Of a DNA stretch of 64,000 nt, positions 24,778 to 64,000 are shown piece after piece (the first letter of the stretch is position 1; each line of letters starts with the position of its first letter). Made by a program: the position numbers and the translations under genes. Source of the DNA: Macrostomum lignano (lineage: Eukaryota); assembly GCA_002269645.1 (NCBI GenBank), contig NIVC01000181.1, positions 62,001 through 126,000 of the forward strand, in the 5' to 3' direction. The notes under the pieces are model-generated. The model was not told where the DNA came from, searched no databases, and was given only the letters and a program-made list of their open reading frames with translations.

Positions 24778-27700
24778 TCATCGATACGGAAGCGCCGGGG
24801 CCGCGGCGGCCTGCTGGTGCAGCCGGCAGTGGCTCAGGTGCTCCTCAGCGGTGGCCGCGGTGTGCCCGCACTCCTCGCAGACGTGCAGCTTCTCCCTGCG
24901 CTCCTTGTGCGCGTAGGCGAGCACCCGGCGGTGCACCTTCTTGCTGTGCGACTCCAGCGAGCAGCGCTGGGTGAAGGCTTTGCCGCAGTCCGAGCATTTG
25001 TAGGGCCGCACGCCTGCGGGCGGGAGGGGCAGCGGCGGGGCATTAGGTGTGCTATTAGAGTAACATTAGGTGTGCTATTAGGGTGGCATTAGGTGTGCTA
25101 TTAGGGTCTCATTAGGTGTGCTATTAGGGTGACATTAGGTGAGCTATTAGGGTCTCATTAGGTGTGCTATTAGGGTGACATTAGGTGTGCTATTAGGGTG
25201 ATATTAGGTGTGCTATTAGGGTCTCATTAGGTGTGCTATTAGGGTGAAATTAGATGTGCTATTAGGCTTAGGGTGATATTAGGTCTCAATGCACAGTTCC
25301 TATTTTAACCATGTATTGCAACCTGTCAGGTGAACTTTCTAACCAATTAGTTCTGGGCTCTGTCAGCCAGCACATTGCACTCAAATTGTGAAAAGCCTTG
25401 CTCAAATAATTATCAGTAGAAATTCAGCAACCAGAAAACTCAGACAGGTGCGCGAAACAATATGTCAAACTGTCAGGAGAACTCGAAAATCCGCTCGAAA
25501 ATATTCGAAGGCTCCGCATGGCCACCCACAGGTGCGAATTTCGATGCCGCTAATTTGCTGCTACAAGAAGCACCAAAAGCAACAGGTGAGTCTGCGCTAA
25601 AATCCATCAGGGCTGGGGCACCCCAGCTAAAGCAACCCGCTAAGCTCACAGCACCTTCGAAGGTCTGAGCATGGCATGTTGGCAGAAACTCGAAGTCACC
25701 ATTTCGATTTTCACTTCCGCATTCGCTTTATTTGCTGCAGTTCGGCAGAGCTGACTTCGAGCTATTCGAATCTATGGCTGCATTGTGAATTTATGAATTC
25801 GAATAGTTTTGAGACCCATTGCTACACAGCAGCCTCCACCCCAGAGCCGATCAATGCCCTACCTTATCGCACCTGTCAATCAGATGAAAACACACACACC
25901 TGGGATCTGTGCTCCGCATCTTCCCCGCCCTCTCTGATCCCCTAACAAAACTCCCAAATGCGGGTCTGTGCTCAAGGCTGCTGCTCATTGCATCAACTGC
26001 CATATTGTTTTGCCTGTGACTTCGGAACTGATGAGGCTCAGAGTCTGGGACCACCTGACTCGGTCGGTAGCGAGAGAACTGGCGTAGGACGCTGGCCCCG
26101 TGATCTAAGCTGCAGATCGGAAAGAACAATGGAGTCCTATTGTTGGAGGCTGGGCGCCCCATCATGCTAAAATAACAGCCTCACCGCTGGCCGAGGGGGC
26201 AGGTGGGCCTCATTAATTACTCATGACCCGCACTAAGCCGCAATTATTCTTGGAAACTTCGCCCGAAGCCGGCCGAGTTGCGCAACCGCGGGCCGCCGCT
26301 CCCCCGGTCAGGGAAAGTCAAACAGAATCTCTTTGATTTTTACACCTCAGCGCCGGTGACTGGGCCGTCTTTATCCCACTTGAGGAAGATTTTTTTCAAT
26401 TGGAATTTCGGATCCAGCGGGGGTCCCCAAACCATTAACGAGCTGGCCTAATCTGGGATTGCGGGATAAAGACCTCTTGAGGAAGTCTTTGTTCGCGGCC
26501 CGTTCCGAACGGAAATCCCCCTCGATACGCCGCGGCCCCCGCTATGTCAGTCCGGGGTTCGAGCCCCGCCGCTGTGGGTGGCGGCCTCGATTGTGAGGCA
26601 ATGGAGAGCGGAGGCTGGGAGCAGCAGGTTGGCTCATTAATTATTCAGTAGCGGCAGCACCCCGGGGAGCCGCCTTTTTTGTCGGCCCTTCATCGCCCAG
26701 CCTCTTCAGCTGATTGACTTTCGGCCTCATCGAGTTGATGCAGGGGAAGCTGAGATCCCAGCGGTGGGGATCGGGAGGCCGCGTATCCCGGCGGGACACC
26801 TGGGAACCTAAAAATCCCATGGCCGCCTCTGCTGAATTTTTCATGTTTTCAGCGTGCGCTCCGGTCACGTGACAGGATGGGACTCGAAACCCTGACCGCA
26901 AACTTCTATTCCCACTCTGGCTGCTGAATTTCCAACTTCTTCATCATTGAAAGATTCTGGGACACCCAGCATCCCAAGAGAAAACAGTTAAAGGCTTAAG
27001 CTTACCTGTGTGAGTCCTCGTGTGCCGCTTCAGGTCGAAGGTGTCGTTGAAGCCCTTGCCGCAGTACCTGCAGAGGAAGCGCTTCAGGGTCGAGTGGCAC
27101 TTCAGGTGGCGGTTCAGCAGCCGCTGCAGGGAGAACTGCTTGCCGCACAGCCGGCACTGGAAGGCGTTCTCTCCGACCTGGGAGCCTGCGGGTGGGAGTG
27201 ACTTCACTCTGAGTCGGGCTCTGGGAGGGAGAGTGACTTCACTCTGAGTCTGGCTCTGGGATGGAGAGTGACTTCACTCTGAGTGTGGCTCTGGGATGGA
27301 GAGTGACTTCACTCTGAGTGTGGCTCTGAGATGGAGAGTGACTTCACTCTGAGTCTGGCTCTGGGAGGGAGAGTGACTTCACTCTGAGTCTGGCTCTGGG
27401 ATGGGAGTGACTTCACTCTGAGTGTGGCTCTGAGATGGAGAGTGACTTCACTCTGAGTGTGGTGCTTAGATTGATGTGTGACTTCACTACTGGACAATTA
27501 CATCAGGAAATTAATTGGCCCACAGAGAAAGTGACATCATTGGTTCGTGGCTGAGGTCTTTAGAACTGACTTTTTCTTCCCAATTCTTCCCAGTGTTTTG
27601 TGAGGTAAAATCCCAACCCGAAATTGATTGATTTGCACCGCAACATTCGAGCTCAGCTCAATTTCCCAGCAAAATATTCGAACCTCCTTTTTTCAAGCTG

Positions 27701-62117: not shown

Positions 62118-64000
62118 GTAAGCTTAAGCCTTTAATTGTTTTCTCTTGGGATGCTGGGTCTCTCAGAATCTTTCAATGATGAAGAAGTTGGAAATTCAGC
62201 AGCCAGAGTGGGAATCGAAGTTTGCGGTCAGGGGTTCGAGTCCCATCCTGTCACGTGACCGGAGCGCACGCTGAAAACATAAAAAATTCAGCAGAGGCGG
62301 CCATTGGATTTTTAGGTTCCCAGGTGTCCCGCCGGGATACGCGGCCTCCCGATCCCCACCGCTGGGATCTCAGCTTCCCCTGCATCAACTCGATGAGGCC
62401 GAAAGTCAATCAGCTGAAGAGGCTGGGCGATGAAGGGCCGACAAAAAAGGCGGCTACCCGGGGTGCTGCCGCTACTGAATAATTAATGAGCCAACCTGCT
62501 GCTCCCAGCCTCCGCTCTTCATTGCCTCACAATCGAGGCCGCCACCCACAGCGGCGGGGCTCGAACCCCGGACTGACATAGCGGGGGCCGCGGCGTATCG
62601 AGGGGGATTTCCGTTCGGAACGGGCCGCGAACAAAGACTTCCTCAAGAGGTCTTTATCCCGCAATCCCAGATTAGGCCAGCTCGTTAATGGTTTGGGGAC
62701 CCCCGCTGGATCCGAAATTTCAATTGAAAAAAATCTTCCTCAAGTGGGATAAAGACTGCCCAGTCACCGGCGCTGAGGTGTAAAAATCAAAGAGATTCTG
62801 TTTGACTTTCCCTGACCGGGGGAGCGGCGGCCCGCGGTTGCGCAACTCGGCCGGCTTCGGGCGAGTTTCCAAGAATAATTGCGGCTTAGTGCGGGTCATG
62901 AGTAATTAATGAGGCCCACCTGCCCCCTCGGCCAGCGGTGAGGCTGTTATTTTAGCATGATGGGGCGCCCAGCCTCCAACAATAGGACTCCATTGTTCTT
63001 TCCGATCTGCAGCTTAGATCACAGGGCCAGCGTCCTACACCAGTTCTCTCGCTACCGACCGAGTCAGGTGGTCCCAGACTCTGAGCCTCATCAGTTCCGA
63101 AGTCACAGGCAAAACAATATGGCAGTTGATGCAATGAGCAGCAGCCTTGAGCACAGACCCGCATTTGGGAGTTTTGTTAGGGGATCAGAGAGGGCGGGGA
63201 AGATGCGGAGCACAGATCCCAGGTGTGTGTGTGTTTTCATCTGATTGACAGGTGCGATAAGGTAGGGCATTGATCGGCTCTGGGGTGGAGGCTGCTGTGT
63301 AGCAATGGGTCTCAAAACTATTCGAATTCATAAATTCACAATGATTCGAATAGCTCGAAGTCAGCTCTGCCGAACTGCAGCAAATAAAGCGAATGCGGAG
63401 GCAAAACTCGAAATGGTGACTTCGAGTTTCTGCCAACATGCCATGCTCAGACCTTCGAAGCTTTTGCTGCTGTGAGCTTAGCGGGTTGCTTTAGCTGGGG
63501 TGCCCCAGCCCTGATGGATTTTAGCGCAGACTCACCTGTTGCTTTTGGTGCTTCTTGTAGCAGAAAATTAGCGGCATCGAAATTCGCACCTGTGGGTGGC
63601 CATGCGGAGCCTTCGAATATTTTCGAGCGGATTTTCGAGTTCTCCTGACAGTTTGACATATTGTTTCGCGCACCTGTCTGAGTTTCTGGTTGCTGAATTT
63701 CTACTGATAATTATTTGAGCAAGGCTTTTGACAATTTGAGTGCAATGTGCTGGCTGACAGAGCCCAGAACTAATTGGTTAGAAAGTTCACCTGACAGGTT
63801 GCAATACATGGTTAAAATAGGAACTGTGCATTGAGACCTAATATCACCCTAAGCCTAATAACACATCTAATTTCATCCTAAAAGCACACCTAATATCACC
63901 CTAATAGCACACCTAATGTCTCCCTAATAGCACACCTAATGTCACCCTAATAGCACACTTAATGTCCACCCTAAAAGCACACCTAATGAGACCCTAATAG
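60636..64000 (+). repeat. Inverted-duplication tract B, right arm (continues past the window end)
   Basis: Reverse complement of ~25100-28366, including the 35-bp (61665-61927) and 22-bp (63830-64000) arrays. Confidence 0.95.

Follow-up and report, generated by a model that had tools for sequence, protein, structure and literature searches.

The inverted Drosophila gene pair hsp70Aa/Ab reportedly evolves in concert, and in the human HBG1/HBG2 genes a converted tract is said to end at a simple-sequence repeat in intron 2. Here we describe a related arrangement in the flatworm Macrostomum lignano, where two ovo genes lie head to head in a 64,000-nucleotide stretch of contig NIVC01000181.1 (assembly GCA_002269645.1, positions 62,001 to 126,000; hereafter the window, about 48% guanine plus cytosine, GC). 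As in the hsp70 pair, divergent inverted paralogs appear to have been homogenised, although in hsp70 this concerns the whole coding region, whereas one internal exon and the promoter escape in the ovo pair. The likeness to HBG1/HBG2 lies in a conversion boundary at a simple or minisatellite repeat in an intron; those genes are in tandem and have a younger history, and we take the comparison as a lead only.

The palindromes of sex chromosomes (human Y P1-P8, and those of the primate and mouse X; PMC3723533, PMC8981503, PMC8327919) resemble the ovo locus in having inverted arms that contain genes, a unique spacer, multi-kilobase conversion tracts and raised GC in homogenised DNA. The ovo locus likewise has inverted arms around a non-duplicated spacer (three collinear blocks and 18.1 kb, respectively), but the arms are short (at least 11 kb seen), 97.7-98.5% identical and broken by non-homologous intervals, and with 1.5-2.3% mismatch in the blocks they fall short of the >99% arm-to-arm identity of classical palindromes. 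It differs further in that the ovo genes stand head to head with a housekeeping-type CLASP gene in the spacer, in having no link to a sex chromosome in an animal that is a hermaphrodite, and in that its arms are known from one genome. Mosaic paralogs such as GOT1 of Tigriopus (PMC3728101) and HMA4 of Arabidopsis halleri (bioRxiv 10.1101/2025.10.29.685298; theory in PMC3924837) share with it regional divergence, near-identical introns beside deeply diverged segments, abrupt tract ends and an island over part of the coding sequence; those pairs are mostly in tandem and come with population or multi-species data, whereas the ovo copies are inverted and come from one genome. We regard the locus as a further, probable case of interlocus gene conversion in inverted paralogs, a known phenomenon, and not as a system of a new kind. 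Its origin probably lies in an old inverted ovo duplication that such conversion partly homogenised, halting where homology was no longer present.

The two genes code for C2H2 zinc-finger proteins of the OVO/OVOL type and are transcribed away from each other, with predicted ATGs at 30318 (minus strand) and 58978 (plus strand), 28,660 bp apart, in line with the roughly 28.7 kb given in the initial annotation. Exon structures were derived from splice sites and reading frames. The genes and the parts of the two arms are as follows.

24778-30318, minus strand: ovo-L, five predicted exons (30318-30291, 29850-29294, 28662-28473, 27185-27006 and 25013-24778, including the stop codon), 396 amino acids
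58978-64000, plus strand: ovo-R, exons 58978-58993, 59256-59812, 60422-60575 and 61938-62117, with exon 5 past base 64000
25121-28384: left arm of block B1, the 3' part of intron 3, exon 4 and intron 4, partner 60725-64000
60725-64000: right arm of B1, partner 25121-28384, continuing past the window end
29155-30023: left arm of block B2, covering the end of intron 1 (where a 12-mer array lies), exon 2 and the initial 139 bp of intron 2, partner 59093-59951
59093-59951: right arm of B2, partner 29155-30023
34969-36355: left arm of block B3, non-coding, 4.65 kb upstream of the ovo-L ATG, partner 54466-55839
54466-55839: right arm of B3, placed 1.8 kb past the CLASP gene and 3.1 kb short of the ovo-R ATG
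28385-29154 (770 bp), minus strand: left divergent island, the rest of intron 2, exon 3 and 88 bp of intron 3
59952-60724 (773 bp), plus strand: right divergent island, its 3' edge in a 22-mer minisatellite (60602-60797)
30024-34968 (4.9 kb): left unhomogenised upstream interval, with the 5' part of intron 1, exon 1, the promoter, a 29-mer array (31126-32108) and a 14-mer array (32777-33567)
55840-59092 (3.3 kb): right unhomogenised upstream interval, with a 16-mer array (56016-57342), a 5-mer array (57986-58360), the promoter and exon 1

The initial annotation had proposed an alignment of the arms; comparing them by BLAST and global alignment, we recovered three collinear inverted blocks of 97-100% identity with sharp edges and a divergence that is not uniform. 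Blocks B1 and B2 correspond to the near-identical tracts already described there (exon 2 with about 140 bp of intron 2, and everything from intron 3 onward), while B3 had been overlooked, as had the CLASP gene in the spacer. B1 contains 74 mismatches in 3251 aligned bases (2.3%) and 12 small indels, giving 97.7% identity with introns 3 and 4 included; its divergence is 2.6% in the half near the island and 1.1% in the distal half, and exon 4 is identical at 179 of its 180 positions. Within B2, exon 2 is identical at 545 of 557 positions (97.8%), and the adjoining 139 bp of intron 2 show no difference at all (100% identity). Over the three blocks together the arms differ by 117 mismatches. B3 (1.39 kb) has 20 mismatches in 1368 aligned bases (1.5%; 98.5% identity), with none across the 717 bp from 34980 to 35696, and occurs exactly twice in the 64-kb window. 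No open reading frame (ORF) in B3 has a Pfam match, searches of the spacer and B3 ORFs against Pfam returning repeat-driven noise only, and B3 carries no Rfam or tRNA signal, the scans for which gave zero matches; the block could be a common distal regulatory element or merely a neutral converted tract. The arms can be followed over at least 11 kb, and as the window end cuts the right one, the palindrome has its outer limit beyond that point. At all five block edges that were inspected, 100% identity gives way to random similarity over a few bases, which bears out the abrupt switches noted earlier; the edge between island and B1 falls inside the 22-mer array (60602-60797) and the upstream edge of B2 inside the 12-mer array.

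Outside the blocks the arms are, as had been claimed, barely alignable. BLAST of 30024-34968 against 55840-59092 returned zero matches, the minisatellites differ between these two upstream intervals, and a tblastx search for a conserved coding exon in the upstream spacers found none. Exon 3 is the sole alignable part of the two islands, with 119 of 152 aligned bases identical (78%) and a further 40 gap columns, and the remainders of intron 2 are no more similar than dinucleotide shuffles (local z -0.3). Introns are either 97.7% identical (introns 3 and 4, 3.25 kb) or random (most of intron 2). Both versions of exon 3 nevertheless keep the family motif QFVNNGxGIRNPLA and canonical splice sites, begin with FAFVPPPPP and end with LEYG, and they have in common a derived 3' end (QD...LEYG) that was not seen in the other ovo paralogs. 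Together with the nearly equal lengths of the islands, the conserved motif and splice sites mark these divergent stretches as old homologs and not foreign DNA. No further copy of the island sequence was found anywhere in the window. The first 26 nucleotides of exon 3 and 7 nucleotides of its acceptor are identical in the two copies (28662-28637 and 60422-60447) despite the saturation of the island. Conversion over a very short patch, constraint on splicing or slippage of (CCG)n could each explain this identity.

Synonymous and non-synonymous divergence (dS and dN, Nei-Gojobori estimates, with pS the proportion of synonymous differences) separates the exons into two groups.

Exon 2, ovo-L against ovo-R: dS 0.069, dN 0.005
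Exon 4, ovo-L against ovo-R: dS 0.024, dN about 0
Exon 3, last 26 codons, ovo-L against ovo-R: pS 0.72 (saturated), dN 0.22
Zinc-finger exons, a window ovo gene against the M. lignano paralog Mlig022280: dS 0.64-0.88, dN 0.05-0.13

The contrast at silent sites between exon 3 and exons 2 and 4 is pronounced (Fisher p about 2e-10). The split between the copies in exon 3 is at least as deep as that from Mlig022280 and of the same order as an old paralog split, whereas in the zinc-finger exons ovo-L and ovo-R are nearly identical and both are far from the two M. lignano paralogs. In the exon 3 motif, where only some 10 synonymous sites can be compared, pS is 0.80 between the two copies and 0.51 and 0.63 from each of them to Mlig022280. 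Two very different ages thus coexist at the locus, and because a saturated exon 3 sits beside introns 3 and 4 that diverge by about 2%, one recent duplication cannot account for it, as the initial annotation had maintained. Since the differences in exon 2 comprise 10 synonymous and 2 non-synonymous changes (p 8e-5), both copies are under purifying selection, and both appear functional. Differences between the predicted proteins are confined to the linker encoded by exon 3, two residues of exon 2 and the short peptide of exon 1, with exon 5 of ovo-R lying outside the window.

The promoters are a second place where the old divergence can be read. The 300 bp before each ATG have three exact 11-12-mers in common, in the same order and at similar spacing, which are absent elsewhere in the window.

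30421-30565, minus strand: ovo-L promoter footprints, ATGACGCAACAG at 30565-30554, CCAGCCAATGA at 30500-30490 and CATAAAACCGG at 30431-30421
58688-58863, plus strand: ovo-R promoter footprints, ATGACGCAACAG at 58688-58699, CCAGCCAATGA at 58744-58754 and CATAAAACCGG at 58853-58863

About 0.03 shared 11-mers would be expected between the promoters by chance, and the gapped alignment of the two promoters has a z of 4.3, a score reached by 0 of 300 shuffles. These three collinear footprints together with the alignment score show that the unhomogenised promoters are old homologs and not unrelated DNA. Nothing else is conserved between the promoters. The three elements may represent a CRE/ATF-like site, a CCAAT box (CCAGCCAATGA) and a TATA-like element (CATAAAACCGG), and the pattern looks like a footprinting of conserved elements against an otherwise saturated background.

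We suggest that an ovo gene was duplicated long ago in inverted orientation, with its promoter included, so that the copies came to lie head to head around the CLASP gene, and that they would have diverged to saturation at neutral sites before any conversion. Non-allelic gene conversion from arm to arm may then have copied kilobase-scale tracts, resetting at least three collinear blocks (upstream non-coding DNA, exon 2 with its flanks, and intron 3 onward) to 97-100% identity. The tracts would have stopped where homology was already gone or at unstable minisatellites; because conversion requires homology, this would leave knife-sharp edges and two untouched intervals, one comprising the promoter, exon 1 and upstream spacer, the other the rest of intron 2 with exon 3. 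An old duplication with repeatedly homogenised arms is what the initial annotation had put forward. The coexistence of two ages is established, as are the sharp edges, the homology of the old parts and the selection on both copies, and conversion is the best explanation of the pattern; that conversion was the mechanism, that it recurred, and that these two arms were its donor and acceptor we infer. Recurrence is suggested by the unevenness of divergence within blocks, which ranges from no mismatch in 717 bp of B3 to 13 (4.3%) at 27970-28269 in B1, with an index of dispersion of 3.0 (p 2e-4). At the overall rate the clean run in B3 has a probability of about 1e-5 per placement, or about 2e-4 by the merged-event count. 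Converted non-coding DNA also has 46-52% GC against 32-46% in unconverted non-coding DNA, which may reflect GC-biased conversion such as has been described for palindromes (PMC8981503, PMC3723533).

Several observations weigh against this history and call for caution. The dispersion weakens to p 0.08 once mismatches within 10 bp are counted as one event, and the GC contrast could instead stem from regional or functional composition. At 97.7-98.5%, the blocks are well under the identity of classical palindromes, so conversion would have been neither frequent nor very recent. Three protein searches (with the full ovo-L protein, with an alignment of the N-terminal halves of both copies, and with Mlig022280g2) led to two distant M. 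lignano paralogs and recovered neither a close relative nor an ortholog from a related species. Exact look-ups of ORFs from the window gave no record. M. lignano is, moreover, a hidden polyploid with known assembly ambiguities (PMC10468722).

One may postulate that the duplication is recent (about 2% ago) and that in one copy the promoter and exon 1, and likewise intron 2 and exon 3, were afterwards replaced by sequence of an unseen old third ovo paralog elsewhere in the genome, through conversion or recombination. Such a donor would yield the same sharp edges and the same two ages, and M. lignano does have further ovo paralogs and a duplicated genome (PMC10468722). We nonetheless consider it unlikely, as it requires at least two separate imports from a locus that is otherwise unsupported, and the derived 3' end of exon 3 common to ovo-L and ovo-R was not seen in the other paralogs. 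A recent duplication also predicts uniform blocks, in contrast to the range from the mismatch-free run of B3 to the 4.3% stretch of B1. The similarity of the two other known M. lignano ovo loci to the window is confined to the zinc-finger exons and one satellite and extends neither to the islands nor to B3. Around those two loci (L001 and L002) no second ovo copy lies within 10 kb on either side, a distance shorter than the 29-kb spacing of the window pair, so that conservation of the arrangement is unaddressed by this result. A further idea is that the ancestral gene had exon 3 in two tandem, mutually exclusive forms, of which each copy lost a different one once a recent duplication had taken place; this would account for a single diverged exon with sharp edges between near-identical sequences. 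It is a highly improbable course of events, since no trace of the alternative exon 3 is left in either gene, independent deletions would not be expected to leave islands of 770 and 773 bp, the M. lignano paralogs carry a single exon at the corresponding position, and the equally old divergence of promoter and exon 1 would be left unexplained.

The locus might instead have been assembled wrongly, by joining or threading together homeologous or haplotypic copies that belong in different places; the two copies would then still form a genuine mosaic, though not one that arose from arm to arm. The hidden polyploidy and unstable karyotype of the species, its heavily duplicated assemblies (PMC10468722) and a window of which about 39% is minisatellite, and so difficult to assemble, all lend this some weight. 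It is quite unlikely in our judgement, however, given that the window is contiguous and free of N, that the spacer is 18 kb long and asymmetric and holds an intact, collinear multi-exon CLASP gene, and that a head-to-head join of two haplotypes would be mirror-symmetric to its centre, which the locus is not. A fold-back read artefact was considered separately and rejected; it would give perfect, spacerless arms and not an asymmetric 18-kb spacer, 2% divergence and non-homologous islands. That the islands arose after a recent duplication, through local hypermutation, insertion of transposons or turnover of minisatellites, is suggested by the differing minisatellites that fill much of the upstream intervals, yet the silent sites of exon 3 are saturated while the exon is under purifying selection, the non-repetitive parts of the divergent intervals are likewise unalignable, and the island sequence shows no recurrence in the window of the kind expected of a mobile element. 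We regard this as extremely improbable, and an old inverted duplication with partial conversion remains the history that we favor.

Membership of the pair in the OVO/OVOL family is indicated by several features. All 120 best matches in a protein search with the assembled ovo-L protein are ovo, OVOL or lin-48 proteins, and Pfam reports C2H2 finger matches in the ovo proteins. By pattern, ovo-L has all four C2H2 fingers with the family signature of the C-terminal fingers, including LNRHLKCH and KERRxKLxVCExCG, and fingers 1-2 of ovo-R lie within the window, its exon 5 being outside. Before the fingers both copies have the flatworm-type N-terminal motifs LKFGIS.IL (eh1-like) and F[VI]NNG.G[IV][KR]NPL, which are also present in ovo proteins of M. 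lignano, Cichlidogyrus, Calicophoron and Schistosoma. The SNAG repressor motif (MPRAFLV-like) of vertebrate OVOL1/2 was not found in a scan of all frames; as this motif is not general among invertebrate ovo proteins, its lack is no argument against membership. The nearest matches to the ovo-L protein are M. lignano P0027 (Mlig022280g2) and P0001 (Mlig007012g1), of which P0027 has the N-terminal DRDSP..DLSG, LKFGIS.ILG and a Cys-Gly-Cys patch in common with the window ovo. The pair is a third ovo locus of the M. lignano genome.

Exon 1 of both copies is a prediction from the sequence. Exon 2 lacks an in-frame ATG in both copies, and in each a short upstream ATG exon with a phase-1 donor restores the frame, giving MSHCVDSQN in ovo-L and METHT in ovo-R; the ovo-R donor is the consensus CAG|GTAAGT in phase 1, in agreement with exon 2. 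An ATG stands at the end of the spliced leader of M. lignano (PMC8629364). We rejected this ATG as the ovo start codon because it is out of frame at the exon 2 acceptor, whereas a short cis exon 1 with a phase-1 donor suits both copies. An exon 1 within block B3 was rejected as well, there being no ATG-plus-donor candidate common to both arms. Exon 2 (74.5% GC) is also crossed by long antisense ORFs of 245 and 234 amino acids, at 29331-30068 (plus strand) and 59071-59775 (minus strand); these are most likely composition artefacts, and a gene caller might choose them over ovo.

The spacer between the arms is occupied in large part by another gene.

36356-54465 (18.1 kb): central spacer of the palindrome, asymmetric, with no inverted self-similarity except satellites
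41416-52673 at least, plus strand: CLASP-family gene (CLIP-associating protein, TOG domain), of which tblastn with CLASP proteins covers about amino acids 300-1500

This gene takes up most of the space between the two ovo genes. Its exons at 48396-48593 and 48842-49213 are 98.5% (66 residues) and 100% (124 residues) identical to M. lignano UniProt A0A1I8F7I2, a match that points to M. lignano or a very close relative as the source of the window. The identity of the gene to a second M. lignano CLASP (P0205/P0206) does not exceed about 39-50%, so it is a divergent, GC-rich paralog. A perfect (CTGCT)n array of about 82 copies (49239-49651) lies inside the ORF at 48698-49957 that bears a CLASP exon, and M. 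lignano protein models disagree with the window here; the array may be coding, intronic or variable in length.

The arrays behind the minisatellite content of about 39% mentioned above for the 64 kb have periods of 4-47 bp, and several exceed 1 kb (e.g., 2220-4305, 11292-12666, 15649-17725 and 56016-57342). A 28-mer satellite family (ATCCTCAGTTGCTGGGCCAGCCTCCCAG) forms arrays at 1-493, 15649-17725 and 43538-44100, the first of them inverted relative to the other two. The 14-mer array AGACAGGCTGGGAT upstream of ovo-L (32777-33567) is 75-78% identical to an array in intron 3 of Mlig022280 (L001 12734-14054), and one satellite family is thereby tied to two ovo loci.

The known picture of gene conversion or of ovo is not altered by this locus, and the role of ovo in the planarian eye, to which the initial annotation had pointed, is only an analogy for a macrostomid, which belongs to another flatworm order. 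It nevertheless offers a compact and clean case of a developmental regulator that is subject to concerted evolution in only some of its parts, the DNA-binding and N-terminal modules of ovo having been kept nearly identical while an internal exon and the promoters have been apart long enough to saturate silent sites. In an animal with transgenesis, it also provides measurable tract edges, several of them at minisatellites. Whole-gene identity would badly underestimate the age of these paralogs. Probes, RNA interference fragments, guide RNAs or read mapping on exons 2, 4 or 5 would strike both copies, which can be distinguished only by exon 1, exon 3 and their promoters. Selection, rather than chance loss of homology, might be what keeps the island around exon 3 and the interval of promoter and exon 1 distinct, although we think this rather unlikely. 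If so, M. lignano would have two OVO proteins with the same DNA-binding and N-terminal repressor modules, differing linker exons and different promoters, a gene-level counterpart of alternative promoters and mutually exclusive exons in which conversion keeps the common modules in step. The pair would then be a natural system for studying the role of the conserved FVNNGxGIRNPL region of OVO proteins.

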